A stretch of 64,000 bases of DNA from the NCBI GenBank assembly GCA_964188305.1, contig OZ076888.1; one strand, given 5' to 3'. Below are positions 18,249 through 64,000 of this stretch, piece by piece. Every line of letters begins with the position of its first letter. Position 1 is the stretch's first letter. This stretch comes from Podarcis bocagei (taxonomy: Eukaryota). Both the position numbers and the translations under genes were made by a program. The notes under the pieces were generated by a model, which saw only the letters and a list, made by a program, of their open reading frames with translations, did no database searches and was not told the DNA's origin.

Positions 18249-18446
<198 letters not shown>

Positions 18447-19358
18447 CTAGAAAACAGAAATGAATAACAAAGGGAAATGCTTGAAGTGTGTGTGGATTCA
18501 CACATAGATATACGTGTATCGCTGGGTGCACACACACACACACACATACCCCTGGCTAGATAAATATATAAATATTGTTATACCCATGCAAACAATATGC
18601 ACGTATGCATCTGGCCCATTTACTTGCCCAACATGCTAAATCACGGAGCTGAGCTCACAGATTGAACTCTAAATGCCACGGTGGGGGGAGGGTGGCGGCG
18701 CGGGGGAAGCGTGAAGTTTGAAATACTGCTTCGCTAATCAGGATGTTGGCTGATCTCATAGAAACGCCGAGCTCTTAACTTAACTATACACCGAGATCGC
18801 CTGTTCTCAGCTAATTTCAGGGAACTGCCATGCAAGATAAATACGGCCCTGGGATACACAAAAGAAGAACGATATCCTAGCGGAGGCTTGAACAAGAAAC
18901 CCAGAGTTTCTATGCCTGCCTGTGTCCCTTCAGACTCCCCATCGAGTCTTTTTCTTTAAATTCTCCCCCTGAAGCAATGCACAACCCCAGGCTAGCCCAA
19001 ACCGGGATCCATTGTGAGACAATTTACAGCGTAAAGAACTGGAATCCCGGGTCTCCAGAAACGAAGACTTTCCACGCCTTTAAGCAAACGTAATCACTTC
19101 TCCTTTAATAAACCTTTCCAGAGTGACAGAACAATACGGGCTAGTTTCCCAGTTTCCTGTCCGGAACGTCGCGTCACTACTGTATAAACTACTGTTTATA
19201 AGGAATAAATGTTTATTTCCCTCCCCCCTCCCCCCTCCTCCAGTAAATAGCGGTGTGCAAAGTCGATGGTGGAAGGAGAGAGGCGAAGGCCACCCGGCCC
19301 AAGCAGATCCCAATGAAAAGAGCTTAGGGGGGGGGAGGAAACTGCGTCTAGCATTTAC

Positions 19359-19522
19359 CTTCATGTGTTTTCGGAGGGAGCTCGGGTGCGTGTAGGACTT
19401 ATCGCACATTTTGCAGAGATAAGGTTTGTCTGAAGTGTGGACGTGCATATGCTTTTTGCGATCGCTGCTGTTGGCGAAGCGCCTGTCACAGCCCTCGAAT
19501 TCACACTTAAAGGGTTTTTCAC
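19359..19522 (-). CDS. ZIC1: ZIC1 coding exon 2 (zinc fingers 4-5), 164 nt
   Basis: Acceptor taatag|GT GAA AAA CCC; [55 protein letters not shown]; donor AAG|GTAAAT. Phases are consistent with exons 1 and 3. Confidence 0.98.
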
Positions 19523-20523
19523 CTATTACAAAAACAAACAAAGTCGACCTAATTGGAAATCTGGCACCTAGATTTTTATAGTATGGAGCAACACCTACAA
19601 CCAATTCTAACCCCCACTTTACTGAACAAGAGTAAATTAAATCAAAGCCTGTTTTCTTTTCCCATTTTTCTTATCTTTCTTTTAAACAGCGAACTGTGGC
19701 ATCTCACCAGAAAATGAACGCCTGGCAAAGGAATACATTTGCGCACAGTTTTGGAAGGAGGGGAAGGTTTGTTGCCACTTTTATGGCTAAATTTGGCGTT
19801 TGTTTACCTTCCCTTCCTTTCCTTATTTATTACGTAGTGTACACATAACCTTCCACGGCTGCACTGTAGTATTAGTTATTAAACTTGCAGTGCATTGCAC
19901 ACTTCTGATTAAACTGTTCAAATCACAATAGCGCCAGCTTTAGATATATTTTTTTTTAAAAAATAGATAAACACACGACAGGTTGTGGAATTTCTTTTTC
20001 CAAAAGGAGAGGGAGAAGGAAAAGACAACACAAGAAATATTAGAACAGGGAGCTGGTGATTTGCGAGTGATTTCAGCGCTCCCAGCCCCCACGTTTCCTT
20101 GTAATAATACATAAACTCGTACAGCTCAGATTACTTACAATAGCCCCACATAATTAAATATTTACAGAGGGTGAGAAATAGATAGCAAGGAAAGCTGAGG
20201 TTAGGTAGCCATATATTTAGCAGGATTTCTCACTGTAAGACAGTCAGTGCCCTCGACTACCAATTAATTAAAACCAATAAATTTTAACAATTCAGATCGC
20301 TGCCATCTTTTCCCCTCCACCCCACACCCTAATCTCCCCCTTTTTCCCTGAAACATTTAGAGCCCTACCTTATATTTGATTTTTCCCACTTAAAAAAAAA
20401 ATAAAGAAAAAGAAACGCAATGTTTGGTTTATAGTGCCAATTAATTCACCAGCTGAACTGAATCCGGCTCTTGGTGTGGATTTGTTTAAGAAAGGAGCCC
20501 CCCACCCCTATATTTATTCCCTA

Positions 20524-22599
<2,076 letters not shown>

Positions 22600-22860: not shown

Positions 22861-23595
22861 ATTCCAAAGCTCTCTTTTCTATAGCTGTTTTATGGAGATG
22901 TAGAAAGATGTAGATGTTATTCCTGTGCCTATCTTTTCCTTCTTTCTTGTGATGGTGATGCTTGGTTCCTGGAGATCGAGATCTTTGAACAACACAACTT
23001 TTTAAGGAGTTGCCCAGGGAAGTCCATTTGTGACTTGCTCCTTTTCCATTTGGGCTTCCTCCTTGTTTTCTTTCAGATGCTCTCCAAAACGCATGTGTTG
23101 GTTACATTAGATTTTGCTTTAAAACAGCAGGCGTGATTTCTGTGGGGAAACGGCTGTAACGTTCCATCACTTTGTTTTTTCTGAATTATTTTTTAGCACC
23201 CATCAAAAGGCAGGTGGGTGAGAGCGCTTAACTTTCTGCCTCTGTGTGTGTGTGTGTGTGTGTGTAGTGTAGTGTTGTTATTGTATCTCCTTGCACTTTG
23301 TTTCTTGTTTTTCTTTCTTTCTTTTTTACGCGACCTCTTTCATTCAGGTAAAAAAAAAAAAAGACTGTATCCCCCCCCCCAAAAGTTGCTTTTGTCTCTT
23401 CTGTGCTGCATGGAGCTTTTGGATCCTGGGGTTTTATAATGTATTTGAAATCCTCACTAGATAGGAGCAATATAAATTTTCTGACGCTCAAACCTTTTCT
23501 AGTTCACAAATCAGTCACCCTTGTCACATTTATTGAAATTCCTCAACTTGCCACACCAGGACGGTGGAAAAAGCAGGCGGCGCCTTTGTTGCTGA

Positions 23596-23735
23596 NNNNN
23601 NNNNNNNNNNNNNNNNNNNNNNNNNNNNNNNNNNNNNNNNNNNNNNNNNNNNNNNNNNNNNNNNNNNNNNNNNNNNNNNNNNNNNNNNNNNNNNNNNNNN
23701 NNNNNNNNNNNNNNNNNNNNNNNNNNNNNNNNNNN
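23596..23735. other. Assembly gap (N140); other gaps at 26486-26626, 56731-56867, 57791-57934, 60524-60671 and 63848-63987
   Basis: Runs of N. Confidence 0.99.
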
Positions 23736-25399: not shown

Positions 25400-26900
25400 A
25401 GTGGTGATCAAGGGGTGGGAGACGCGGGGCGGGCTAGGAAATGCGGCTTCCCTTCTGCCAGTGTCAGGCCAAGCGCTGGAGCAACCTTTCACCTTCAGGA
25501 GGCTTGTTATGTGCATGAATGAACCTTAGGAGCCCCCCCCTCTTCGCACATACTCTGCGGATGTGGTTTGGCACCTTTTCAGGCACGTGGGCAGAGACTT
25601 TCCTCCACGGGAGACTGCTGGGAGGTAAAGCTGCACCTGGCCCCACCGCCAAAGGCGGGCAGGGCTTTCCCTTCCCCGACCCGAAGGTCCACGCCGCCAA
25701 GTGGATCGGGGCGTTTGTGATCAAAGTGCTTCCCATGGTGCCGCTGGGACAAGCGCCCTATAGCTGAATGCCCACTACAGGAGGGCAGACGGAGAAAAGA
25801 GAGGGCAGCGAAAGAGATGCGATTGCCTCGGAAGAGAGGGAACAGGAGGCGGAGAACATCAGAGTGTGTATCCTAAGCAGACAATGCCCTAGGGTGCCGA
25901 GCGTTAGAGAAGTGCGGTTATCTCGGTCCACCTCTGCTCCAGCCTCCCAACCGTGGAAGATGAGTCGCTGCTTTGGGCTCGAGGTGCAGGGGGGAACCGA
26001 GAGGCGGGGACTGGTCAGCCCAGGTCTTGCTCCCCCTTGAGAACTCGGCACCAGTTTCTCTGTTTCAGGCACTCTCTCCTGCGTAGTTAGGAAGGAGTTA
26101 ACCATGTCTGTGGCTAAAGGTCTAGTAGCCAAGACTTCGTAAGCTTTTCACAATGGACCTTCCATTCCCATCTCGATCAGGAGCTCTCCGTAATCGAGTG
26201 ACACTCCCACCCCCCTTACACACAAACACCCCACTCCACCATCATTTAACTCCTTGTTTCTTTTTTTATTCGTGCAAAAATGTCTACCAATCTGCATGGT
26301 GTTGTTTGGTTTTGGTTTTTTTTAAAAAAAACAACCACCACCAAACCCTTTCGCTGATTTATTTTGCTGCATTTTTATTTTATTCTTTAAAGAGAATATC
26401 TGTAAAATCTGGATCAGAAGGAGGAGGGCGACAGAGCTTTAGGCTATCCAAGTCTTAAAGGGAATCGAGAGGGATTTCCACGAAANNNNNNNNNNNNNNN
26501 NNNNNNNNNNNNNNNNNNNNNNNNNNNNNNNNNNNNNNNNNNNNNNNNNNNNNNNNNNNNNNNNNNNNNNNNNNNNNNNNNNNNNNNNNNNNNNNNNNNN
26601 NNNNNNNNNNNNNNNNNNNNNNNNNNTCGCAGTGGCGAGACCGGTGAAGCCCGTTGCATTTCCTTGGCTACTGTTGATCATGTAGTTAATCAGTTTGGAT
26701 AAGTGTTGAAGGCTTGAGTTCTTGAAGTGGCCGGCTTTGGAAACACCCCTGGAGCTTGACCTCTGACCTGCGACCGGGAACATGTGCCGGGCCCACCGTA
26801 TCCGGGACAATGACTCGAGTGTGTAGCCGCGCGCCCGCGCGCCCGCGCGCCCCCGCCTCTGTGCACATTGGTTCGCCCTTCCGTTTCGAACGACTAGCTC
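25400..26900. promoter_or_regulatory. Intergenic CpG-rich region; candidate distal ZIC4 promoter/first exon
   Basis: GC/CpG-rich, E-box CACGTG at ~25584, donor-like TTC|GTAAGC at 26139. Confidence 0.45.
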
Positions 26901-36439: not shown

Positions 36440-37628
36440 ATGGACTCTGCTTCACTCTCCAAACGGAACACGGCGCTGAAATTACTAGGCTTGGCAGGGG
36501 CTCCTCGTCATCGTCATCACCGCCACCATCACCACTCCCCTCAGAGCATGACAGGCTTCGCCGGGCATCCCCACTCCATGGTTCCCACGCACCCTGGGGA
36601 GTACGCTGCAGAAAGCCGCCTCGGGCTGAGTCCATTCCGGTCAGAACACATGGGGCACCACTACCATCCTCTCCATCATCATCATCACCACCGCCACCAC
36701 TCTCATCCTCCTCATCACTCAGCGGCCCTTAAGCTCAGCCCTGCCCCTCAGCCTCATCCCCACCATCCTGTGACAGGCCAAGCCGAGGTGGTACCCAGTC
36801 CAGCAGGAGCATTTGGCCCGGCGCAGTCAACAACAGTCCCTTACGCAGTCCCTCACCCAAGTCATGCTCTTTCATCAGGTAGGGAATTCTTCCTGCGCAG
36901 AGATCTGACAGCCCCAGTCATGCCAGGGCTCCCTTATCAACACTCTGCTGCTACAGGTTCTCACCATGGAATGTTTGTCTCAACAACAGGTAGCTACCCC
37001 GGACACCATGCTCACCACCACCACCACCACCTCCACCACCACCACTCAGAAGCCGGAACTCCCTCGCTTTTTACTGGACTCCACCATGAGCAACCTCCCC
37101 ATGCAGCTCCAGGTGGCCATCTAAACGGACAGATAAGGCTGGGGCTACCTGGAGAAATGTATGCCAGGTCTGAACCTTTCACGCCAGTACCAGTCTCCAG
37201 GACAGATCCTTTTGCTGCTTCCTCCTTCCACGGCTACGGTGGCATGAACCTGAACGTGAATTTAGCTCCACACCACGGCCCTGGGGCTTTCTTCCGCTAC
37301 ATGAGGCAGCCCATCAAGCAGGAGCTCATCTGCAAGTGGATCGAACTGGACCAGACTCCCAAAAAATTATGCTCCAAAACTTTCAGCACCATGCACGAGC
37401 TGGTGACTCACGTCACCGTGGAGCACGTTGGAGGGCCGGAGCAGTCCAACCACATTTGCTTCTGGGAAGAGTGTCCCAGAGAAGGGAAGCCTTTCAAGGC
37501 CAAATATAAACTGGTCAACCACATCCGAGTCCACACGGGGGAGAAACCTTTCCCTTGTCCTTTCCCGGGATGCGGGAAAGTCTTCGCTCGCTCGGAAAAT
37601 CTCAAAATCCACAAAAGGACGCACACAG
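36440..37628 (+). CDS. ZIC4: ZIC4 coding exon 1, long non-mammalian-type N-terminus (His-rich, ZF-NC, zinc fingers 1-3)
   Basis: [20 protein letters not shown]...[19 protein letters not shown]...HKRTHT; phase-1 donor ACAG|GTCAGT. Head-to-head with ZIC1, as in the known ZIC1/ZIC4 pair. The start codon is less certain than the 3' boundary. Confidence 0.93.
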
Positions 37629-42279: not shown

Positions 42280-43100
42280 CTTTGGCTCCACGGCCACTGC
42301 TGGGAAATCGAGGTGGGGCGAGGGCGACAAGAGCTCATCGCTCAATAACCTGTGACCTGCAGACACGCCACCCCGCCACCCCAATAAAACCCGCACACCC
42401 GCACCTTTCCCCACCCTGGTCCTTTACGCAAAGTCTCCCTGGATTCCCTCTTTTCCTTGCAGGCGAGAAGCCCTTCAAATGCGAGTTCGAGGGCTGCGAG
42501 CGCCGCTTCGCCAACAGCAGCGACAGGAAGAAGCATTCCCACGTGCACACGAGCGACAAGCCCTACAACTGCAAAGTGCGAGGCTGTGACAAGTCCTACA
42601 CGCACCCCAGCTCCTTGCGGAAGCACATGAAAGTCCACTGCAAGTCCCCACCTCCCAGCTCGGGCTACGAGTCGTCCACCCCGTCGCTGGTGTCGCCGTC
42701 GTCGGACTGCGGCCGGGAGCCCCCTCAGCCGCCGCCGCCGCCGCCACCACCACCACCTCCCGCAGCGGCTTCCTCCACCCAGGCGGCAGCGAACCTGAGC
42801 GAATGGTACGTGTGTCAGAGCTCAGGGGCCAGCGGCATCCCGACTCCACCCAGTAACTCTCCGTCACCTCACCCGGGAGAGGCCGCTTACACGAACTGCG
42901 AGCCCCGGCCCACTTATTAAAGTCAATACGGTAGGATGGCCCGCCGGCGGCGGCGAGACTGCATTGTTCTTTTCGGGGTGCTGTGGATCCTTGGCTCACA
43001 CTGGACGAACGGCGGGTCGGCAAGGCCCGGTTCTTGGGGGAGGGGCGGAAATCGATCCCAGGCCTGGGGAGCAAGCCCCTCCCCCTCCCCCCTCCCCAGC
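42280..43100. promoter_or_regulatory. CpG island over ZIC4 exon 2
   Basis: High CpG and GC content. Confidence 0.7.
42463..42920 (+). CDS. ZIC4: ZIC4 coding exon 2 (zinc fingers 4-5, Pro-rich tail), read-through form ending ...EPRPTY*
   Basis: Acceptor ttttccttgcag|GC GAG AAG; [30 protein letters not shown] is the ZIC4/5-type finger 4-5; NLSEWYV motif; TAA at 42918-42920. Joined CDS 1647 nt = 548 aa. Confidence 0.93.
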
Positions 43101-44130
43101 CTCTTCCCTCTTCCCCCAGTCAGTCACCTTCGATCAGAAATGCTGCACAGGCTATCCGAGAGAAGATACATGGGGGGGGGGTGGACAAACCTCCTCCCTC
43201 TCTCCCCCACCCCCGTTTTGTATTTATTATGGCACAGAGGACAGCAGACCCCCCCTCCCGCCACCTCCACCTCCCCGCACCTCTTTCCATGAGCTCTTCT
43301 TTTTATTTTACACCCTCCCAGGGCAGACTCCGCGGACCAACTCCTTCCCATACGTTTACAATGGCCTCGATTTGAATGGAAACATCCTTTTGTATCAATG
43401 AACCAAAGTGTTTTAATACGGATTTCTAGCTGTACAGCTGCGATCGTCGGTGCTGGTATCTTGTGATGGTGTTTTTTCTTGGACAGTTTTATTAGCCCAG
43501 TGTCTGGATTTTAATTGGGTTTCTTGGCGGGGGTGGGGGGCTGTGTGCGTGTGCTTTTTTTCCAAAAAGGAACATCAGTATCTATAAATATATTATTTGT
43601 TACCGAACTGTACAACAAATCGATCAATTAAATACTTTGATTAATTTACCAGTTCAGTTGACGTTTTTTTCGGGGGGGGGGAAATCTCTTTACTGCCCCT
43701 TTTTCACCAGTATATTCTTCCCACTTGTCACTAATAAAACAGACCCAAGGGTGGCTTAATGATTTATGGTACATTTTAATTTACACTAGTAATGGATTTA
43801 AATGCATAAACATATTCTCCTTTTCTCTTTCCCCTCCCTCGCATTATTTCTGTTGAATTGTGAGTTCTTGTGATTCCTTAGTGGATGGAAGGTGAGATCC
43901 ATGTTAATTGGAGAGAAGGGGGGGAGTTGTTATGAGTGACGTAATTGTGTTGAGTTGCTTGGATTGTCCAAAAGGATTCACGACGTGTCGATTTTTTCTG
44001 AACCCGTGGTGTAAACCCAGTGGTGGTCTGGTTTTCAAACGCACAACAGTAGTTATGTAAAATAACAATTCGAAATATTAATTATTATTTTTTGTAAAGG
44101 TAAAAATAAAATGGTTTTAAAATCTTGAAC
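42921..44130 (+). other. ZIC4: ZIC4 proximal 3' UTR (read-through isoform)
   Basis: AATAAA at 43733-43738 and 44105-44110, with upstream TGTA/U-rich elements. Confidence 0.55.
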
Positions 44131-44723
44131 ATATGTCGAGGTCTCTAAAGCTATATGATTCTTATCAGCCCTATGCGAGTCCTTGTCTCTAGCGAATTCC
44201 CCAGACGGAGGGGTGGAATGCTTGTGGAAATATTATTATATGGATTTCATTTACTGATTGTAGCTCCTAAACGCATCACTTTGTAGTAAGACCCATATAC
44301 TTCAATGAAACTTATTTACAGGAAGTATATTTAGGAATGAGGGAGGGGGCGTGGTTCATTCTAATCGATTTTTAAACTATGGAAAGGCCCATTTGTCTGT
44401 AGGCGCTATAAGATCTTAGCCAAAACACTTCTACAAAGCCATTTCCTTCAGTTCAGTGAAGGAGAGTGAAGCAAAACGTCCAGCCCAGTCTCTGGGTTAG
44501 CCATGTACACACCACCAGCAACAGAAATTTCTTATTTCCTGTGGAATGTATTATCCCTAGAGCAGTCAAGTACAACATTTTCCTGTTGCCTAGAATGTGG
44601 TTCCAAAGGGAATGTGCTCTGAGCGTGAGTGAGGAGGGATAATATCAAAACAATATATCCTCTCCTACCTTCCTTAACATTCCCACGTTTCTGAACTCTT
44701 TCTTTCTCTCTATCTTCCTTGTG

Positions 44724-44805
44724 CAGCAGGACCATATGCTTATTTACTCGGAAGTAAGTTCCACTGAGTTCATTGGGACATCCCAGTGAAGTGTGAACAC
44801 CGTGG
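44724..44805. mobile_element. Decayed ~90-bp palindromic MITE copy
   Basis: tatgcttatttactcggaagtaagttccactgagttcattgggac. Confidence 0.5.
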
Positions 44806-45337
44806 TACTTACGTCTGAAGATGGGGCGGTTGGTGTCATTCAGGCATTCACATTTAAAAAATAAAAAAATAAAAATAGAAGAAAGTCTACCTATTTGGGT
44901 ATCAATCCATCTATCACCTATCTACCTTTTGAACAATGTGCATGACTTGGTTCCCCATTCCTTCTCACTGCCTCAGCGAGAGATCCTTAATAGATCGTCG
45001 AGTTAAATGGACGAAACATAGCAAACAAAGAAATAACCATCCCGTCCCGATTCTCAGGATAAAAATTAAAACAAGATATTCGTTGCCATTACTGCTGCTG
45101 CTCGTTTACTCCCTCTGATCTAGTGGAGCCGTCGTGGAAATGAGAAGGTAGAGATGGATGGATGGAGGCCATCTGCGAAAGATGCTTCCACCTTGTCTGG
45201 AGTTGGGTTGCCCCCTCCCGGCTCCGTCCCTCGGCCCTCCTCCTCCCTCTCCCTTTTCTTCTTGATTTCTTTCTTTGCAGAAGCGGTTTTTGGATGTGTA
45301 GGCTAATCACCTTTAATTTTTCATTTGCTTGTTACAG

Positions 45338-46787
45338 ATGTCTATCCCGTTGCTCTCAAGGTAATCTAGACAGAGGCAGCTGAAAAGCCCCGCATCTTAT
45401 GCCTTAGACATCAAAGCAGTCTCTCACAATGAAAGTATTTCTTCGCAACGGTGAATCTTCATGGTGAGTTAAGATTTCTATAGCAATAGGCAAGTCATAC
45501 TTAAAAAGAGTGAAAAGCGAAGTCTGGAGCCCGTCCAGTCTTTTCATGAAGGACATAATATTTAGGTCTAACAGATTCTCTCTCATTCTCCCCATCCCCT
45601 CGCCGCTCAGTTTCTTTCTCCCATCCTCACCGATGTATATATAAAAAAACAGAAAACACCCCAACAGTGCCAAAACCACATCACACACACACACACACAT
45701 TTGTATGTTGTGTTCGTGATGGACGTGGAGTATGCATATTTTCCCTCCGAATTTCCGGGGCAAGAAAACCCCCACGCGAATGGGGGTCCTTGTTCCAGCC
45801 CATAATCAGAATGGATAAGAATGTCAGGAAGAAAAAGGGGGCCGCCTGAATCGCCGTCCGCCAGTTCACTTTTGTTTCTCTCCTTCTGGGCCATGATCAG
45901 AGACGGCCTTTGGGATTTGATGGCGACTTTTCTAAAGGCGAGGAAATGGGTTTGAAGGAGGGAAAAGAAAAGGAGAAAGGTCTAATCAAGCCCGGCCTTG
46001 TTCAAAGGCTCTGATTTTTATTTTATTTTTTTTGGTTGGAGGGTGGGGGTTGAAAGTGTGAGCTTTATGGTGCATCAACATGCCACGTTAGGATCGCTAT
46101 GGTAATGAGCCTAGCAATAGCAAGCGCCCTTGAAAAGGAGGCACACTCCATTCGAGACAGTCTATTAAGATACATTTGCACTGACCTTTGGTTTCATGCT
46201 AGCTTAATACATTCAATCTGCTCTTCCTCAGAGATGGACTTCCTCCATCTCGTCCCCTTCGGCTTGCTTTGCTGGCTTGCTCTCTAAGGAGGGCTTTTGT
46301 TGCAGCATCTTGGATCTTTGCGATTAAGAAACCGAAGTAGGGGAGGGCGGGAGGGGGCGAGGCGGTTTTATAAGAGCTACCAGTGTCGAGTGAAATTTTG
46401 CACCCATGGAAATCTGGGGCTGGGCTGGGACTCAATAGTAGAGGACCCACTTTTGTTCAAAGCAGCCCATCTGGCTAGAATAGGACTGCTCAGGAGCAAG
46501 TCAGTAGTGGACCAGTTTTGTTTACTAGTGAGCTCACAAAACTCTTGTCTCCACGCCCCTAGCCTTAACCCTCCTAAGACATCCTACAAGCACGGTCCAA
46601 ACAGTAGCTGGTGTCACTATTCTTATTCATAAATGTATATATTTGCTGATCTTTGCTTTGCAAGTAACATTTCGATATTTCTGTGTCTGACTCCATCCTC
46701 CTTAGGATCTAGCTCCTTGCTGAATGCTGCGGCTTTAAGTTGCTTTTTGACACTATTTCCTTCTTTGTAAACACACACAGTCACATC

Positions 46788-46819
<32 letters not shown>

Positions 46820-47200
46820 TGAAGATAGAGACTGAACTAGAAAGGGATGCCATTTCCAGAACAAAGACTGAGGAATCTTCTGAATTTCTTGACTCTTTCA
46901 CGGAAACAAACAAGGACTAGATCCTAGGTGTGTGGCAAAAACCATGTCCCAAGAAATTAGGGTTTAATGCCTTCCAGGGCTACAGAACTTGACACTCCCA
47001 AGTCTGAGGCCACGGACGATGGGCCACGGTCCCGGGAAAGTTAGAAGTCCATGTTCCAGTAATTGTCTTCTTGTTTATTTTATCCAAGTACCCCAGTGAA
47101 TAGGGGAAAAATAAACACGCCGAACAAAAAAAAAATTCAAACAGTCGAGTCGTCTTTAGTGCTAGCCCTTGTGGCTGAATAAAAAAGGATGGTCCAATTT
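45338..47200 (+). other. ZIC4: ZIC4 alternative terminal exon (last base of a split TGA stop + distal 3' UTR)
   Basis: Strong acceptor tttttcatttgcttgttacag|ATGTC. Joined to donor GAATG|GTACGT (42805) it forms TG+A = stop. AATAAA at ~47110 and ~47178; the 3' end is uncertain. Confidence 0.65.
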
Positions 47201-48759
47201 CTATTGAGCTGAAAAATCTTTGAAGTGGGAGTTATTATCTGAGAAATTCCTCCTCGTCGCCCTAACAACGCTGATGAAACGTAAAAAGGTTCTTTGTCAG
47301 CGATTTGTTCTCCCCTCTGTCAAACTCCCTCTGCCCCGTTAGCTGGGACCGTTTCTAAAGAGATGGAACCAAACTTCTTAAAAGATAACGTTGGGATGGA
47401 GACAGAAAATGTCCCAGTATACAATCAGATACATACATCTACCTACGTCTGTCTGCCTATGTCTGTCTCTCTGTAGGTGGAGGGGGGCGTGTAGCTCTAG
47501 GGTGGGGAGGGTGGGAGGGGGAAACGAGAGGGGGGTGGAGAACGAGAGCGAGAAAGGATCCCTTCTGCTTTCCGAACTTCTCAGCCCCAGAGGAACTGGA
47601 TCTTCTATTCCGAACTCATTGGCTTGAATTCTGCCCAAGCCTTTGTTCTTTGCACAAAACCCAACTTCCTACGAACGCCGTCCATGAACACCAAGTCTGT
47701 AGCTGCTGAACCTCGCTACCCTCCCATTATCCCAGTATAAAGAATGCAACAGCTCGTACATGCCTTTATTGCAGGCTCGGCTCGTGTTAATGCTGAGACT
47801 ACCTACTAAAAAGCACGTTTCTCTACTGCAGTGCACTAAAATGGTTACGCCTTCAAAGCGATGGCTTCCATATGTCTCAATGTTTTATTATCAGCGAGTG
47901 GAAAGAAAAGTAACAGCATCCCACTCACTCCGCAACTTGGTACTCTCAATTGGGAGGAAAAAACAACAACAACACCAAACTCAAGAGTCCATAGATGTCT
48001 TTGGGAATGAGATAGTGGCTTGGAGAATGCACTGCTCACCAGTTTAGCATTTCTGCCACACTGGTAGTTTTGGGTCCCCATGAAATGGTAGCATCGTTGT
48101 TGGGCCCTCTTTTGTCGCAGCCAAGTGCTGAGTGTAAACTATTGGCAGTGATCCCAGTAAGTTTTTGTTGGCTCAGAGGCTGAGGAAAGAAGAGTGGTTT
48201 AACTGGTGCCTGTTTATTGGAAGATACTGGGCCTTGCATTATGGAGGCCGTCTTAGGAATTCGCAAGCACCCTGTCCATACCTCAGTTAGCAGAAGGATT
48301 TGTCGTTTAAACCAATTGTACATCATCAGTTCCAATCCATATGTGAAATAAGTCCTAGTGAAATAAATAATAATGACTTCTATGTATCGTGTTTAGTTTT
48401 GAAATGTTTCCAGCGGGACTCTGTGGTCCTAAACAATTTCTGAAGTAATAAGCTTCTTTGAAATAAGTGAGATTCATCTTAAATTTAGGCATTTATTCAG
48501 GATTGAGGTTTAAATAGCACTTGCCTTAATCAGAATGAAAAATATAGACAAAAGAAGAAACACAACGCAACTCCCACCCACCCACACTATAGTATTAGGG
48601 CAATACTTTTATTAGGCCAACAAAAACGTCACAAAATAGTGAGGAAGTTTTTGAGATCTCCAAAAGTTGAGACTTCAGCAAAACGGAGTGGGGGGGGGGA
48701 GAGAAAAATCGTGGCGTTGGTATCATTCTTAAAAGGGGGTGTGAGAAAAGATAGCGGAG

Positions 48760-50143: not shown

Positions 50144-51683
50144 TTGCACAAAAGAAGGACAGGCCACTAAAATCAGCGAGACTCACACCCAAGTAAATGT
50201 GTGTGATGGCTAGCGTCTGTAGCACTTCCTTTTTGCTGGGAAGGAAGGTGTGCTTATACAAACGGTGCTTAGATCTGAGTAAAGCTGGGATAGGGCGATC
50301 GGTTGACTGCCCATTCCTTGGTGTGTTCGGAAGCAAGTCCCCCTGTGCTACTCTCTAGCAAGTGTGTTGAGGCTTCCATTCCACCTTAGTTGTGCTCCTC
50401 ACACTCCTTGCTTGCATTCTTCACAGAATGCATCTGTGTTACTATGCATCTACAGAAAGCCGAACTATATGACCAAGGTGGGGTAGAGGAAGACCAGGTT
50501 AGTGGAACGTGGGAAAGGAGATCAAGGAAGTGAGGGGAATGTGGGTTGTTCTACAGACGGCAAGGTTGGCGAGTAGGAAGCACGACGACAAAAAACAAAA
50601 CAAAACAACGCCCCCTAACCCCAACCCAACGCTGGAGAGTCGGTGACTATTAAAGCCAAGAGTTATATGGCCCCTAATCGCAGACAGAAGCCCTGTAATC
50701 ATCATTGCACTCGGCTGTAGTCAGCAAGACATGGAAGGTTCCCTCGGACAACATGGGGAGAGACGTGTGGGCAGGCTTCCCTGCTTTTTCTATAGACGCT
50801 GCTGCCTTTTTCTTCCTTTAATGCTGACAATCCATTTCGGATGGCTTCCTCCCCTGTTGCTTTCTAGCATCGATCCCCATGCAAGCCCCTGCATTGTGCG
50901 GACGCATTAATTAAAGACCATTCATTTCACAAAAGGCCATTTGTATCTTTAGGAAATGAAGATTAGAAATATGAATCAGGACGGCCGAGCCCCGTTTCCG
51001 CCCAGGCACACTATACAAGGGAGAGGGGCTGGGGGGGGGGGAGGCAGGCAGAAGAAGAAAGGACCTTCGGGGTCTTTGCAACCTCCTTTAATTGAATGCC
51101 CATAAAAACGAATGGCCCGCGCTTCTCTCTAGAAGTATATGACCCGGGGGGTGGTGATGATCCGCCCTCGCCGCCCGGCTTCTTGCGTAGAGACGGTTAG
51201 ATTCGAAGGTAGTGTCAGGGAATGTCAGGCGGAAGCTGGCTCTCGGGTCTTGGTCCGGTTCCTGGAAAGACATTTCCGCTTTCCGAGTAAAGGACCAGGA
51301 ATGTTTCAGAAATGAAAGTTTTGCCAGGAGGAACACAATGGACACTTTCGGGTTAGAGGTTGCGAGCCACGCAGCCACGATTTAAGTTGACTTTGTGCGA
51401 AGTTCCCTGCGCTCTTGGAAGAAACGATGTATGTGTAGTGTGTTACGTGGAGATCCAGAGAAATTCATGCCATGTTCGTTTGCAGGCATACAACACAGCT
51501 TCCATGAATTGCTCTCCTGAAATCTTTGTTCGAAACAACTCTTGAAATCTACCAGGGGTCGTGTCACTACGGAGTGAAGGAGTACCCTCTCGTCTTCTTG
51601 CCTGCTTCCCATACAATTCAATGGGGCTTGCACAAGAGGCTCCTCCGGTGGATTGTGTTTTACACATTTTCAGGCCCGGTATA

Positions 51684-51829: not shown

Positions 51830-54800
51830 CCGGTATATTCACATCCAGTAGCTAGCTACAACAAATGGAAACGAGGGGCAATGTCGTCTATGCTGACTAG
51901 GCACCCTGAGGGCCAGAGTGTTCCATTATGTCGATGAGAATAGAGAGATTTGAAACCTTAACGCTTAACTTTCTAAGTGGTACTGACCGCTAAGCACACA
52001 CACATAAGGATTTGGGAGGCAAGCCTAGCCTTGATTTCATGTAATGTGCTCAAAGGATGGGTCCAATGAGATGACTGGGTATTACAGGTCAGATAGATAC
52101 ACGCTACAACTGGCGCACACAGTCGCGTGAACTTAGCATCGTGGCGTTCCCACGTACATCAGTCCTGTTGTTGGCGTCATAACCAAAGGAAGAAGTAATA
52201 GAAACCAGAGTAAAATTAGGGAATTAAAGGTAATCGAGTGTCCTCTCCTGCTTTCACTCCCCACTTTTCTCATGCGCACCAGAAATAACCCCAGTTTCAC
52301 TTAAATCCCAGCATGTTATCTGGGTCATATGTTCATTTGCTTACACTCACATTATTTTAGGTTACCTTCTGAGAATGGTGATTTCCAAATGAAGGCGAAA
52401 ATGCATGGAGACATGCAGACACCTATTTAAAGCACGTTCTTCCTTTGAGCCTCATGCAACCTCTTAACCAAAGAGTAAGTCTTCTTTTGATAGAAAAGAA
52501 TTCATTTTTATATAATATAATTCCTATTCCGTAGAGATAGGATGCAGAAATGATACATCATCGGGATTTTTTTATTCCCTTCTTCTTACTTGTTTATTCA
52601 AAAGAACTGCTGCAACCTTTGCAAAGGTGCAAAATGTTTCCTTTCTTTCTATGCATGTTCAGGAACTAAAGAAAATTCGGGAATTGTGCAGCTACAGTAT
52701 GTGGTAATTAGTTCTTTAAAAACACACACAGAGAGTGAAAACAATGCAAAAATGATCAGCATCATTATAAATGTTTTATTTTCACGGATAGATCCTGAAT
52801 GATATATTGAAAGAGCAGTTCCTTCTTTTGCAAATTAACCTTTGAACCTTGGCTGAATCCCATCGCCACTGCTACGTCAGTAGCATTCAAAATGCAGTTT
52901 GAAGAAGGTAGGTTTACTTTTTCAAAACTGTTTCTGCACATCTTTCTTCCTCTTAAGAGCAAATAAATCGATGAAGATTGCAGAACGTGCAAAATTTCTA
53001 GCAAGTTCTTAGGGGGGGGGAAATGGATTCAAAATATTTCATGTGACGTTTCCTAAATATGGGGGTGGAATAAACCTCTCGATCAATGCATAAATTTGGA
53101 AAATTACTGAATGATCCAACGTCTCCTTCCCTTTTTGAAAGAAACCTGATCACTTTTCAGTTACGTATATACTTTTTTTAAAAAAAAGATTTCTACTTAA
53201 CCGTGAGAACTTCCTATATTATCTCCCAATATTTTTGTCCCTTTTCTCTCTGTATGTTTTGGAGTGTTGGGGACCTCGATCCACAGCCCAGTTAAGCGAG
53301 GGGCTTCATTTATTACCTGTTTCATTGGCCTTCAGTGTGGCTCAGTCGGTTTAAATACACTTACTCTCGTCTGACTGAATGGTGGCAGAGTTCTCAGATG
53401 CTTTCACATAATAAGCCAACCGTTTATATTATTCCTCTTTAAAACTGACTACCTCAAGGCTTAGGTAAAGTTGTTCTTCACTGAAACGTCGAAAACAACC
53501 CCACAACCCACCTCATCTGAATCAATCTCATTAATCTCAACTGAACTACTTGAGAGGCGAAAAATGTAGCCATGCAACATAGTGCCATTGTTTTATTGAC
53601 TCCGAATCTATTCACAAGTGTCGAGTTTGAAGATATTACAGCACTCTTTAGCATATTTATTTATTGATATGGCTAGAACAATATATCTCCAGGTAGCCCG
53701 TGACAATTTTATTCTCTCCCTTAGCAATAGCTTAGCTATGCTGCTAAACATCCTGATAAATCTGGTCCCTACTACAACTGCTTGTATTTTTCCTAAACTT
53801 GAAAATGTTGTTGGTGGTGTGTGGGTGTGGGTGGGTGTTACACAAGCACACAAAAGAAAAACAGCAACGTTTGATTGGGGATAGGGAGTACCTCAGATTA
53901 TTTTTTTAATCGTCCAGGAAACGGTCCAATTTAAGAGGGGGGGAAACAGTTGTAAAAATTCAGACACTCCTTTAAGTGTGAAATATCATTTCATTGTGCA
54001 AAGTTAAAAAGAGAGTCGGTAATCCAACTTCCGGAAAGTGTTCTGAATTATTTCAGCAGACTCTTTTAAAGGGGATTAGCAGGGCTTTAGGGGCACAATC
54101 CTTCTGTTTTATTCAATCTCTGATTTTATGTTATAATTACGAGATGTAAAGCCTCTTGAATTAGTATGCAGCCGTGGTCCAGACATTATGCAGGTGCTAT
54201 TCTAATCATTCAGCTTTTTAATTAAGGGACGAGGTAAGAAAACAGAATAATAAAAACACTTTTGTGAGAGCTGAGAAAATTGTGAGCGACTGAATGAAAG
54301 AAGCCTTTATACCTTCTCCTGACAGGTCAGACACCAATTGCCTGACTTACGACCTTTTCTTGGTGAAACAAGGCTGAACAGCTTTCTCACCTTGTTCCCA
54401 TTATATGGCTTTTATACTCGTGGAGAACTTATGGAAATGCCAATAAGATTCTTTCTTAAATTGAGGGGTGGGAGGCAGGGAAGCCGTAGATATTTCCATT
54501 ATAATAGATAGGTAGTTTATAAGAAATTACTTCCTCTCTTAACATTCTCAAATGGGTGGCCAACGTGGATATCAGCGATGGCCACTAGCATTAATTATTT
54601 GTCTTTTTTAAAAAAAGAGAAAAATGTTTCCTTTGGATGTAATCCTGGCATAAGGCAATTCCAGGAGGGAGGGGCTGCAGTGGAATAAGCATCGCTGGTG
54701 TTTAGTTATATGTTCCAACTTCCAAGCATAAAGTTTCTGAATTAGGCCCTTAGCAGATTAACAGAACAAACGTAGCCACGTCTACTCATAAGTAGTTAAA

Positions 54801-55890: not shown

Positions 55891-57249
55891 GGGTGTCAAC
55901 CCTTTTTAGTTCAGTGTGGGAGAAACCCAAGTGCAGCTTAACATTAACCCGATTCTCACCATGTTTATTTGGAAGTAAGTCACCTAAACCTACCCAGTTT
56001 CTGTAGGTATTCTTAGGACTCGTTCCTCGCAGGTAAGAAATTCCGCTCAAATCGGTGGGACCGCTATAGAAATGAACTGTCAAAGGCTGAAATCCCAAGC
56101 CCTTCAATTCGTGACTTAATGGGCTGTCAGCAAGAGGAGTTTGGCCGTTCCATTTCAATTGCTCTCCCACCACCTAAAAGGTCCAAGCCCCACATCCCAA
56201 ACTGACTTGTGTCTCCCTCTGCCCAGGGCAGCGGGGCTCTTGACACAGACTTCATCGGTGACAGTTGGATCGCTCCTCGAAGGATTTTGGAATTCCCTCG
56301 GTCAGATCCAGATTCACTCCATGATGTGTTTGCGCGTGAGCGAGTGACTGAATCGATCCAGCGTAGGCAGAGGTCCATTTCTCTTTCCCTCCTCCCCTTG
56401 GTTTGCCTTTGCAACTAATTGTATTTGCAAGAAGAAAGGCAAAGTTTGTTCTTTGGTTCTTGGAAGGAATATTAATAGGAGGAGAAAGAGGCGGGGCAGG
56501 GGCTGGGTGGGGGAGAGACCGGCTGGACTTTGGTGCACTGTATGCAAATATAGTGGGGGGGGGAGGTTCCTTTTTTTTTTAGGGAAGGGATCTTTTGGAG
56601 TTGGCTTTCTTTATTCAAATGGAAAACCTCCCTCTCTCTCCCTTTCATTTCCTGTCCCAGAACCACCTCCCGCGTCACCTCCCGCCCCAGTTCGGAGCAG
56701 AGTTCATTGGCTGTAAATGAATCAATCCGGNNNNNNNNNNNNNNNNNNNNNNNNNNNNNNNNNNNNNNNNNNNNNNNNNNNNNNNNNNNNNNNNNNNNNN
56801 NNNNNNNNNNNNNNNNNNNNNNNNNNNNNNNNNNNNNNNNNNNNNNNNNNNNNNNNNNNNNNNNNNNATTAGGATATCACGAGCACTCGAAATGATCAGG
56901 AGTTCAATGATTTTGCTTTCACGGATGAGGAGTCTTAGTTCTCCCCCCCCCCTTCCCCGCCTCCCAATGTAAATCAAGCGCTTTAGTTATTAAGGCTGTG
57001 CACTAATCTCCAACAACCTCCGCATAATGTGCCCGATGCGCCGCACCACTTCGCACCTGCACCCTGAATAGAGGCTCCTTTTCAATGGAAGACACGCTTG
57101 TTGGCCCTGCTCTCCAAAGAAGTTGTCTGAATAAGTCAAGCTCGCTGAATGCCCAGACTCGTTTTCGCTTGCTTGCCTTTGATCAGGGAAAATGGCTCCT
57201 AATTTGTCCGGTTTTTTTCTTCTTCTTCATTGTAACATCGTTTTGAGGT

Positions 57250-57308: not shown

Positions 57309-58085
57309 TAAATAAAAGAAGAAAAAGTGTCCAAACCACATTTTCCTTCAAGGGGGAATACATTGCCCCGCCCGCGGGGAAAAAACAAAAAGTAAACGCA
57401 AAAATGTTACGTTGTGATGGGAGGTCATTCACCTCCACCGGCTGTTTGGAAGTCCCAAGCAAATAATCCCCAGCTATTTCCCCTTGGTCAAGTTGAGTTT
57501 TTGTTTAGTGTTTTGTTTTGTTTTTGAAGAGAGGAGGGATTTCCTCTCAGTTCCTTTTCTATAGTTCTACAGAAACAATAAAAGACCCGCACATTTTTCA
57601 GGACGAAGAAAACCCGGAGCATTAAAGTCAACTGCTTAGAGACGGGCGAGGACTCAGAGGAATGGGTATACATATGGTGTGTATGTAGGCGTACATGTAC
57701 ACACATGCACACATACGCAGAATACACAGCCACAAACAATAGTGGGCTTTTACACTGCTGCCACCCTCGGTGGAATCTTATGGTGAAGGGNNNNNNNNNN
57801 NNNNNNNNNNNNNNNNNNNNNNNNNNNNNNNNNNNNNNNNNNNNNNNNNNNNNNNNNNNNNNNNNNNNNNNNNNNNNNNNNNNNNNNNNNNNNNNNNNNN
57901 NNNNNNNNNNNNNNNNNNNNNNNNNNNNNNNNNNAAGGAGCTGGGGGTCAACAATGAGAATATATTTTATTTACTTTATTTGCTTTTTTATTTTAATCAT
58001 CCGATCATCTGTAGGTGAAGAATCCTGTGTAACACGAAACCTCGCTGTTGTTTTTAAAGCACAAATCAGGCGCAACCCTTGTCAC

Positions 58086-58676: not shown

Positions 58677-60799
58677 GGTGGAAGTTAATGGGACTAAGCG
58701 AAAACAGGTCGTTGGCATATCCCATAACAGCAACAACAGGCTGGATGTGTAGAATCTAAAAAGAAGCAGCACCTCTGGACATTTTTCTCTGAACATCTCT
58801 GAGGAACAATTATGTGTTTTTTGGAGTGAAGACTGGTTGCTCCCCCCCCCCAAAAAAAGGCCTGTATTCTGAAAAATCTTAATATAAAGATGCTTCTCTT
58901 ATTTCCCGATAGGCTACTGCAAACGGGACATTCTTCGTTTTTAAGTGATTCATCTTAAAAGGGTGCTCTGAGGTTGAGCTTCCTGTGGGAGAGGGAGTCA
59001 TGGTGTCCTTATTACAGCCCCCTCCCCAACATTCTCTACGGATAAGCTTCCAGTAGCAGACCCTTCCTGGCGACCGTGTCCTCATTCTCAAATGAAAGGG
59101 CTTGGACATTCCAGCTGAGATAAACTCAGGTTATGATTGTTGCAAGATGACACCGCCCCCGTCAGGTAAGAGCCATCCCGCACATTAGGCAGTAACAAAC
59201 ACAGGTGAAGATTCGCCGGTAGAGATACTCAACTCGTAGCTGCAATCAGTCCTGTCACTTTGACTCTTTATTTTGTTTCATTAGATGATTTAGGTATATA
59301 CCGCTTATCTACATTCATCTGTGAGCAGTGTGCCTGAATTCCAATTCAGAAAAGGTAAAACTCGGTTAAAATTGTAAAATCAGACTTCAATTAAAATGCC
59401 TGCTGGATTTTCTTTTTTTAAGGACTCCAATAGGCACTCGAAGTTCGGCTGGGAGGGAGCCTCCCTGACCTCAACTATACAAATTTCGTCGTGTGAGACA
59501 CATATTTTCCAACAAACTGAATGCCTTCACACTTTGCACGTGTGAACAGGCCTAAGTCGGTCATTTCAATTGACTTTCCTGCAAAAGCTTAGGAATGAGG
59601 TATCTTATGTACCATAGGCAGTGAGAAGGGTTAACTCCCATTCACCCAAATGTATTATAGATCTCAGGTGGACTGAGGACTATATTCCTTGGCTATTATT
59701 GGACCATCATTCCTGGAACGCAACAAATGGTCTTCAAACTCCGCCACTCCGCCCAAATCCTTAATATATCAAACAGAAGCTGCTGGGAGTTAGCATGAAC
59801 TCTCCTTCCCCTTCCTGCAGACCTCCTGTCTCGGCGGTCCTCCTCAAGGTGTCTTGACGGTTCAGCTTCAGCGTCTTTTAGCTCTCACCGATTACAGAGC
59901 CAGAGCAGCGGCACCAGATTTCATGACCATTGAAATCCACGCGGATTCAAAATGCTGTTGGTAATGAAATGGGCGGCCTTGACCCTCTCATCCCAGGGAT
60001 CCCTCCTTCCGGTTTCTGACATGTGCCAGTTGCATTGGCGAACTTTCTCGCGTTGCATGCACTGCTCTCCTTTGCTACGCCCCAATTCGGGGCATGCACT
60101 CGCAGTTTCAGAATCTGAGCAGCCATCGCTGCCTGGTGGTTACCTAACATGACTCAAATCCCCAGGTATACGTGGATCCAGCAGAAACCTCCAGCCAGCT
60201 TCCCCTCTCTCCACCTTTCTCTGTCGTCTTCCCTCCCCTCCCCTCTAGGAACACCAAGCGGTTTTTTCCTGACATTACCGTAGGCTTGGACTAATAGAAA
60301 GCTAAGATCTCGCCCAGCCCGCTTCCCGCACCCGCCCGCCAATACAGTTTAAAACACTTTGATGTCTTGCCAGGAAATATACTTCCTTCAAAGAGGCATG
60401 TCAACATTTGTTTTTCCCATTAAATGGCGTTTAGTTGCCACTGGAAGAAAAAAAAATGATGCTAAAAGACCACTTTTTAATTCGATGTATAACAACCGCG
60501 GGGGTCTAAGAGAAAATAACGGCNNNNNNNNNNNNNNNNNNNNNNNNNNNNNNNNNNNNNNNNNNNNNNNNNNNNNNNNNNNNNNNNNNNNNNNNNNNNN
60601 NNNNNNNNNNNNNNNNNNNNNNNNNNNNNNNNNNNNNNNNNNNNNNNNNNNNNNNNNNNNNNNNNNNNNNNTCACTGCTAATGCAGGAAGGTTTACTGCA
60701 AGGGGAAAAAAAAAAAGCTATTTACACCTTCAAATAGAAGCTTTTGAGATTTAAGAGTAAGGGTCATACATCACCAAGAATAAATGATTATGAATTGGT

Positions 60800-61520: not shown

Positions 61521-64000
61521 GAGACTCGCTGAGGAGATGCTGCAGAAAGAGGAGTAAGAACCTCACAGCCTCCCTAATCTCATCCATAAGTGCAAACTAA
61601 CAATTGGAGCGGTGGTGCGGAATAGGGATATTTCAAGGAGAGACACATTTCCCAGGATTCCCTTTATTCCTTGCCGGTCAAAAGCTCTTGGGTCTTGACC
61701 TCTGCACATAAGATGTATAAAGGCAACCTTCCCTGAGGACCAGACCGGAGAGAAAAATCAATCTCCGTTCTAAGAGCCGCTTCACACGTTACGCAAAAGG
61801 AAACCCGAGTTTGTGGACAAATAGCCTTTTTTAAAAGAAAAGAAAAGAGAGAGAGCTTCAGTCAAACAATGCTCCCTGTAGTGCGTACCTGTGTGACACA
61901 GCTGCTTGTAAACCCATGGATGTCCTATTCACACGTTATGTGTTTAAACATCTCAGGTGTATAACTAAACACGTAGAGCCGAAAGCGGCGAAGGCACTGA
62001 GTTAAGGTCAGCCTGAGGCCTGCCACCCTAAGCAGCTTCCACTGGGAAGCAGGACCCGCTGAAATCAGTGAGATTTTACTCCGGATATATAGTTTGGATT
62101 CGCGTGTTAGCTGAAAGCCACAAAACCTTAGAACGAGGGAGCACGGAGGGGTCAACTCCTTCTTATTTGCCGCAAGGAAACCAAACTCTTGCTGAACAAA
62201 ATATTTGAAAGATCAATTTCCTCGGGATTTTCCGTAATCTTTCTCCGAAAGCTTAAATTTAGACGACGTCAGTTGTGTTAACATGCACACACGCCTCCCT
62301 GGAAGTAAGCCCTTATAAACTTGGAGGCATGTCAAAGGAGTTCCTTTACTTTATAAAGCCTCGGTGGAAAGGGTAGTTGATACTTTAAACTCTTGAGACC
62401 AGATTTGAGGTTCAAGGCAGCCCGCACCGCACCCTCTCCCCAATAAATCGGATTCCAGTTGTGACAAATTTTGGAGAGAGAGAGTGTGAGAGAGGTGTGA
62501 AGAAAGGGGGTTCTGACACTCTGTCTCTCAGTAGGGAACAAGATCTGCTGGCGGCCTCCAAGATTTCCCCCCTGTCTAAATCATGCACGATTAAAAGACC
62601 TGGACAGATTCTGTAATAAAACCTCTTTTTATAGGCTGGCTGAGATTTTACTATATATTCTAAGCAAAGAATGGAAATGCGAAGTGGGCGGAGGTAGAAA
62701 TGAAGGATATTAAGATTTAGTTGCTGAACGCTGGTCGCTTTAACTGAACCCCTAGACTTCATCCTTTGACACTTATTGGAGTGACACATGCTAGCAACTC
62801 CAGGGTAATCCTATAGACCCTTCCTTGGAAAGAAGCTTCATTGGATACAATGGGATTTGTTTCCGAGTAATCATTCACAGTCTCGGGCTTCACAGAAGTA
62901 AAGACACCATATCCTGGGGGTAGCAACCGTTCCTGTAAAACAAACAGCAATTCCAGAAGCCAACGCCACAAATACACGCGAAGAGCTTGGACTGGCGAAG
63001 ACGCAGCATCATTTGCAAAAAAAGTTGCTGTTGAGATCGGCTGCTTTCTAAATTTTTACTCCAGCTGCGCCCCCACCCTCTTATGGTCCTCTCCTCGCGT
63101 GATGGAGTCCCTGAGTCATACTGTCAACCGGCCCACGACCCTTTTCTGTTTCTTCAGTGCAGTGGGCAGGACCAAAGCCAGGAGTGGACAAGGCGCCCTC
63201 TTTTCCCCTCTCTCATTCTGTCACCCCTTTCTCTCTCCCCTCCCCACTCTCTTCCTTGCCCCCTGCATGAGAATAGGCTCAGCGCCAGAGCGAGTCCTTG
63301 GGCGGGAGGTTGCTCACCCCGACCCATAGACCTGACCACCACCTCTGACCAGAGTTCCCTGGAGACATCTAGACAGGCTTCTTAAACCACAAGAAAGTTA
63401 TTCCACGTTCCTTCCGCATGGAATCAAGTTGCTTTATTATGCCCTCTCTGTGTTAAGGTCTGGCCTCTGTTCTCACTGAACTGGTCCCCTTCCTCGAACC
63501 CCCGCCCCCAATCTATGTGTTACTATACGAAAAGAAAACCTCTGATGATCCATAATATTCTCCTTTATCTGACTTCTCTCTCCCCCCCACCCCGGGCTCC
63601 TCGGTGTTGTATACATTTCTCTAATTGCTTGGCAATGTTTTCTAGAGATGACATCCCGAAAATGTGTCATAGTAAATTACCTTTGTAATAAAATGTAAAA
63701 AATGCAAATAGCTGTTGTCTTTATTACGTTTTAAACCATTGGTTTATCTGCACTATTTCACTTGTCAGTCGCACAATATGTCGCGGGGAAAGGCGAAGGC
63801 ACAGTTTGAGAGCAGATAGATGGGACCTCGTGTGTAATCTTGCAGACNNNNNNNNNNNNNNNNNNNNNNNNNNNNNNNNNNNNNNNNNNNNNNNNNNNNN
63901 NNNNNNNNNNNNNNNNNNNNNNNNNNNNNNNNNNNNNNNNNNNNNNNNNNNNNNNNNNNNNNNNNNNNNNNNNNNNNNNNNNNNNNNGAAGGCATTTACC

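Follow-up and report, generated by a model that had tools for sequence, protein, structure and literature searches.

In a stretch of 64,000 nucleotides (nt) from the lizard Podarcis bocagei (GenBank assembly GCA_964188305.1, contig OZ076888.1; hereafter the window) we analysed the 3' end of the Zic gene ZIC4, which is predicted to encode two alternative protein C-termini. Open reading frame (ORF) listing and motif searches revealed a squamate ZIC1/ZIC4 pair placed head to head, with ZIC1 on the minus and ZIC4 on the plus strand, an arrangement described previously (PMC7403390). When the window ORF was used in a protein search, squamate ZIC4 proteins were the best matches (83-89% identity). Exon 1 carried the Zic-type C2H2 Pfam domains zf_ZIC (E 1e-27), zf-C2H2_15 and zf-C2H2, exon 2 carried a further zf-C2H2 domain, and the divergently transcribed neighbour was ZIC1 (exons 21669-18252, minus strand). 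The KHMK/V intron present in ZIC1 is absent from ZIC4, where the finger exon continues directly into the C-terminal region. Judged from its sequence, the gene is the ZIC4 orthologue, a Subclass B Zic gene. The features used in the analysis are the following:

36440-37628, plus strand: ZIC4 coding exon 1, N-terminus to zinc finger 3, from the ATG to a CAG/GTCAGT donor (assigned by ORF, Pfam domains and identity to squamate ZIC4)
42463-42805, plus strand: the part of ZIC4 exon 2 common to both forms (zinc fingers 4-5, linker and ...AANLSE, then TG)
42803-42811, plus strand: internal 5' splice site ATG/GTACGT within the W-Y-V codons, the weakest donor of those compared
42806-42920, plus strand: read-through coding tail ending ...EPRPTY, plus stop; long form only
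42921-44135, plus strand: long-form proximal 3' untranslated region (UTR); AATAAA starts at 43733 and 44105; end approximate
42806-45337, plus strand: intron predicted to be removed in the short form, 2532 nt, holding the long-form tail, 3' UTR and poly(A) signals
45298-45337, plus strand: acceptor, with a branch-point-like CTAAT, a pyrimidine-rich tract without internal AG, then AG
45338-45463, plus strand: stop-completing exon, whose first base A completes TG/A; 3' end uncertain (45360, 45463 or further)
45298-45610, no strand assigned: deeply conserved noncoding block embedding the acceptor and small exon, from skink to shark

A first-pass annotation of the window had proposed that splicing from within the codons for E-W-Y-V creates a stop codon and so exchanges the ZIC4 C-terminus. 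Read directly in the window, all of its coordinates were correct to the base. The codons GAA TGG TAC GTG occupy 42801-42812 and contain the donor GAATG/GTACGT, which places the last exon base at 42805; the acceptor AG lies at 45336-45337 and is followed by A at 45338. The upstream exon thus ends in frame with GAA TG, and the next exon supplies the A of the joined codon TG/A. Translation of the gene model gave a spliced form of 510 residues ending NLSE and a read-through form of 548 residues ending EPRPTY, both as predicted, and the two AATAAA motifs start at 43733 and 44105. Aligned end to end, the 510- and 548-residue models corresponded to Pogona vitticeps ZIC4 X2 (522 residues, 88.6%) and X1 (561 residues, 88.9%), respectively, and these two Pogona isoforms differ by the same tail as the two forms in the window.

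The internal donor is weak. Its U1 duplex energy was -4.6 kcal/mol compared with -7.7 kcal/mol for the exon 1 donor, and it was also weaker than both candidate donors found after 45338. Such weak U1 pairing, as calculated from the sequence, fits an optional splice site. The context RTG/GTAYGT was common to all eight species compared (the window and seven others). Coding for W-Y-V forces TG/GTAYGTN and leaves only positions +4 and +7 free, so a latent 5' splice site comes with EWYV in any Zic gene that has it. That this site in the last coding exon is usable is indicated by the orthologue models, in which the same site ends the exon. Further upstream, at 42575/42576 within zinc finger 5 (after ...KPYNCK), the window reads AAA/GTGCGA. 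Bird RefSeq isoforms, for example Motacilla X5, join the point orthologous to 42575 to the same downstream exon, resulting in a truncated fifth finger.

To follow the acceptor across vertebrates we used ZIC4 loci from non-human species, primate proteins entering only as rows of match lists. Loci were chosen by a longest annotated product ending ...LSE (duck, caecilian, deer) or by a long-form product (skink, frog, catshark); as retrieval considered only the longest product per gene, Pogona X2, Latimeria X2 and Monodelphis X3 were not covered. Skink, duck, deer, caecilian and frog have an almost unchanged acceptor tract, and the shark a recognisable one; the A after the AG is present in all six. 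In the window a CTAAT motif lies about 30 nt upstream of the acceptor, and no earlier AG precedes the acceptor AG. The annotated coding sequences (CDS) of tufted duck (Aythya; locus L002, 24597), caecilian (Rhinatrema; L003, 15743) and white-tailed deer (Odocoileus; L006, 20870) all end on the A after the orthologous acceptor AG, in agreement with a split TG/A stop made by splicing from within the EWYV codons. In these three species that A is followed by a short exon and then GTAA, as in the window. The skink (L001), frog (L005) and catshark (L004) loci have the acceptor tract 1.4-2.7 kb downstream of the long stop, again with AG then A.

Compared by eye, the window and the skink showed no differences across the acceptor, and in duck, frog and caecilian one to a few positions were changed. 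A 19-nt run of the pyrimidine tract was unchanged in shark. In eel, conservation was clear only in the core around the downstream donor (see below); an acceptor-like site with A lies upstream of it, with uncertain homology. Although a single A after an acceptor would on its own be expected in about 1 of 4 cases, the agreement goes beyond chance because the acceptor, the A and their flanks are conserved in seven vertebrates and three orthologous CDS end on that A. The surrounding block was also conserved: over 45345-45610 its identity to the window was highest in skink (94%) and duck (89.5%), followed by caecilian and frog (82% each) and deer (80%); shark reached 83% over 45406-45569. Its sequence could act as an enhancer, as an RNA element or in both ways. 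Rfam returned only two sub-threshold bacterial small RNA matches for the block, which we take as chance. Inside it, at 45520-45545, lies an invariant CTGGA...TCCAG inverted repeat with a centre of 4-5 nt that varies between species, which could form a small hairpin or serve as a palindromic binding site.

The two endings differ in their taxonomic spread. Among about 390 retrieved Zic proteins, the endings ...NLSE and ...ADLSE occurred only in tetrapods. Short endings were present in frogs (Spea X2, Ascaphus), the caecilian Rhinatrema, turtles (Gopherus X3, Chrysemys X4) and many birds; in squamates they were found in Pogona X2 (in two annotation releases) and in Ensembl models of three elapid snakes. 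Mammalian examples came from platypus, marsupials and placentals, with ADLSE in non-human mammals including apes. No Logan transcript ending ...LSE was among the matches listed. Sequencing runs labelled as RNA exist for the same species. Small runs of unlabelled type, which we had guessed to be RNA, contained UTR and intron words; they are probably DNA and were set aside as uninformative on expression.

The long form also bears signs of constraint. Its 38-residue tail is nearly invariant in squamates, being identical in Varanus and showing 1-3 changes in tegu, skink and gecko. A long tail of the same design (EWYV, then CQS.G..(I/M)PTPPS...SP) is found in sharks, in ZIC5 and in arthropod Zic proteins, and since it is shared with ZIC5 and arthropod Zic it represents the ancestral Zic/Opa C-terminus; ZIC1-3 end directly after EWYV. 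The read-through sequence of placentals and birds has diverged into unrelated alanine/proline-rich text, which makes the short form the constrained one there.

Downstream of the long stop, alignment with skink gave 64-92% identity in most 100-nt bins up to about 44184, followed by 36%. Both AATAAA motifs, together with an ATTAAA at 43627, were conserved at the aligned skink positions. The AATAAA motifs, predicted as poly(A) signals, thus lie between the internal donor and the downstream acceptor. Two UTR blocks, at about 43380-43500 and 43541-43666, have conserved counterparts in duck and caecilian and, in part, in shark. A functional proximal UTR that ends near 44130 would be expected to show this pattern. 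The claim that both forms are intact, with the C-terminus tied to the 3' UTR, is supported by comparison: three orthologous CDS end on the A, short isoforms are annotated across tetrapods, and the long tail and both AATAAA are conserved. Birds have an alternative exon, seen as the tail of Haliaeetus X5, that is joined to this same EWYV donor; it maps in the duck to positions 23333-23416 of the retrieved locus, which are orthologous to the UTR blocks at 43380-43666. A third 3' arrangement may therefore exist.

The extent of the stop-completing exon is less clear. The first-pass annotation had pointed to a further donor-like site at 45361. The motif CAAG/GTAATC is indeed present at 45360/45361, but its role as an exon end is doubtful since bird isoforms read through it. 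Motacilla X5 and Haliaeetus X8 enter the exon in another frame and both end ...MSTPLLSR, the terminal ...LLSR and stop being what reading through AGG TAA gives. We accordingly rejected 45361 as the sole exon end. A consensus donor, CATG/GTGAGT, lies at 45463/45464 and is the better conserved of the two: all eight species, eel among them, have it, and the sole variable base is A or G at +3, both compatible with a donor. Judging by where its protein tail maps, a GenBank model from vole appears to use the orthologous donor. A motif scan found no AATAAA or ATTAAA between 45338 and 47109, and with about 1.7 kb free of these signals the exon starting at 45338 is probably internal. The distance from the stop is 22 nt to 45361 and 126 nt to 45464. 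Nonsense-mediated decay generally acts on mRNAs in which over 50-55 nt, approximately, separate the stop from the last exon junction downstream. If the exon is internal and its junction lies 126 nt after the stop, the short mRNA would be a candidate for this pathway.

The arrangement is most probably that of a composite terminal exon, in which splicing is set against proximal polyadenylation and the C-terminus and 3' UTR of squamate ZIC4 switch together. Read-through of exon 2 and cleavage at the AATAAA at 43733 or 44105 would give the 548-residue protein, carrying EWYV and the ancestral Zic/Opa tail (ending PRPTY). Cutting at the weak 5' splice site encoded by W-Y-V and joining to the acceptor 2.5 kb downstream would instead allow the first exon base, A, to complete the TG/A stop of the 510-residue protein ending NLSE. 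The two processes would compete on one pre-mRNA. Use of the internal donor would remove both the proximal poly(A) signals and the tail, leaving a short protein with a different 3' UTR, and through this competition C-terminus and 3' UTR would change together. Production of both mRNAs by this species, like the way in which the choice between them is regulated, is an inference; by analogy with ZIC1, loss of WYV and the tail would be expected to change activity. Several points weigh against this interpretation. Support for the junction in this species is comparative, and the isoforms of the orthologues are gene models taken from databases, some of which are computational. All sampled isoforms from shark, ray, sturgeon, gar, coelacanth, eel and mormyrid are long, with their X1/X2 differences located elsewhere. 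Moreover, the acceptor sits at the edge of a block of about 300 nt conserved to shark, and the constraint on this block could be that of an enhancer and not of an exon.

Of the other explanations, the one with the most in its favour holds that the short transcript is mainly unproductive and prone to decay, tuning the level of ZIC4 instead of supplying another functional protein. The stop-completing exon would be internal, and its stop, more than 55 nt upstream of a later junction, would mark the mRNA for nonsense-mediated decay. The missing poly(A) signals in the 1.7 kb after 45338 agree with this, as does the donor CATG/GTRAGT 126 nt after the stop, conserved in eight species and with an equivalent that the vole model appears to use. 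However, in placentals annotated ZIC4 is usually the short form and the tail has decayed, so there the short mRNA must yield protein; and were 45361 the last junction, a stop only 22 nt upstream would be exempt from decay. We consider this outcome unlikely as a full account, although it can coexist with the proposed switch. Conservation of 45298-45337 solely as part of a developmental enhancer, with the junction unused in this lizard and only long protein made, appears improbable to a greater degree. Conservation does continue uniformly well past any exon boundary, the block is the first in a series of deep noncoding elements that extends downstream of ZIC4, and sharks share it even though their sampled isoforms are all long. 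Against this stand the full acceptor grammar of the site (branch-point-like motif, pyrimidine tract without AG, AG, then A), its use in gene models of a lizard, three snakes, turtles, birds, amphibians and mammals, and the complete identity of window and skink across the tract. Finally, the short form alone might be functional, read-through representing intron retention and the long ORF a relic. While this holds for placental mammals and largely for birds, with their drifted alanine/proline-rich tails, the squamate 38-residue tail is intact, almost invariant and still matches shark and arthropod Zic tails, and the proximal 3' UTR with both AATAAA is conserved with skink; for the squamate gene we regard a relic as very improbable.

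Other features of the window were noted alongside. ZIC1 looks complete (18252-21669, minus strand), with exon 1 within 20521-21669, a zinc finger 4-5 exon at about 19200-19400 and a separate C-terminal exon at 18252-18263 (minus strand) that ends the protein with NFNEWYV. The ZIC4 linker contains about 12 proline codons in a row at 42724-42760; the length of this run varies among squamates, and turtles, birds, amphibians and fishes have none. Additional conserved noncoding blocks lie downstream of ZIC4 at 45750-46275, 46904-47470, 47687-47909, 50704-51224 and 53949-53997. Over 47020-47395, identity was 90% in duck, 89% in deer, 85% in caecilian and 81.5% in catshark. On conservation, this chain of blocks probably consists of developmental enhancers of the ZIC1/ZIC4 pair. 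The window also holds six runs of N, each of 137-148 bases (23596-23735, 26486-26626, 56731-56867, 57791-57934, 60524-60671 and 63848-63987).

The isoform pair as such is not new to annotation: RefSeq and Ensembl list it for many tetrapods, a lizard among them, and what we describe is the expected orthologue. The annotated ZIC4 pairs (Pogona X1, 561 residues, and X2, 522 residues; Spea bombifrons X1/X2; Gopherus; many birds) use the same donor, acceptor and TG/A stop, and their forms differ by the same tail of 38-39 residues; structurally, nothing sets them apart from the pair in the window. They differ from the present case in that the junction here is assigned by orthology, and in that the tail has decayed in mammals and birds whereas both forms look intact in the window. 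In our literature search, incomplete in coverage, no publication turned up on the ZIC4 split stop, on its two forms or on both being kept outside mammals.

A well-known parallel is the immunoglobulin mu heavy chain, where an internal 5' splice site competes with an intronic poly(A) site in the switch between secreted and membrane forms. As in that system, ZIC4 has a predicted optional 5' splice site in its last coding exon and poly(A) signals in the intron, and C-terminus and 3' UTR would be replaced together. In contrast to immunoglobulin mu, the downstream exon of ZIC4 adds only the third base of a stop codon and no residues, and there is no membrane or secretion logic. The closest likeness within the family is to ZIC3-A and ZIC3-B, in which Zic 3' exons also swap the C-terminus and one isoform lacks NEWYV. 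These isoforms have alternative last coding exons, and the extra exon was found by cross-species conservation (Bedard et al. 2011, PMC3157443). ZIC3-B, however, skips exon 3 and gains about 49 new residues from exon 4, whereas in ZIC4 the donor lies inside the motif and nothing is added.

Functional expectations come from ZIC1. Deletion of its last 11 residues, including NEWYV, raises activity, a gain of function, in a Xenopus en-2 assay, and C-terminal truncations of ZIC1 cause craniosynostosis (Twigg et al. 2015, PMC4564895). The ZIC4 short form resembles these truncations in losing the extreme C-terminus including NEWYV, with the effect on activity shown for ZIC1. In contrast to ZIC4, the ZIC1 truncations are pathogenic mutations in a Subclass A paralogue. 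Subclass B ZICs also differ from ZIC1-3 in transactivation (PMC7403390). A functional consequence of the ZIC4 short form is, by this analogy, plausible.

NEWYV is a conserved Zic end motif of unknown function; among the human ZICs, only ZIC4 lacks it (Twigg et al. 2015, PMC4564895). The comparison presented here explains this exception: ZIC4 still encodes the motif and splices it away, by means of a donor that the codons of the motif themselves create. It also indicates that the long tail is ancestral and that the acceptor tract predates tetrapods. Lizards, turtles and amphibians, which keep both versions intact, offer natural systems in which to probe what motif and ancestral tail do. A block conserved from sharks to mammals contains the acceptor, its A and the donor 126 nt later. 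On these grounds we tentatively raise the possibility, for now more doubtful than probable, that the switch between ZIC4 with EWYV and the Opa tail and ZIC4 lacking the tail (or a transcript prone to decay) is gnathostome-wide, and is older and more tightly regulated than the gene models suggest. If so, the absence of NEWYV from mammalian ZIC4 would reflect fixation of one arm of an ancient switch, which the motif's own codons (W-Y-V read as G/GTAYGT) would have made possible.

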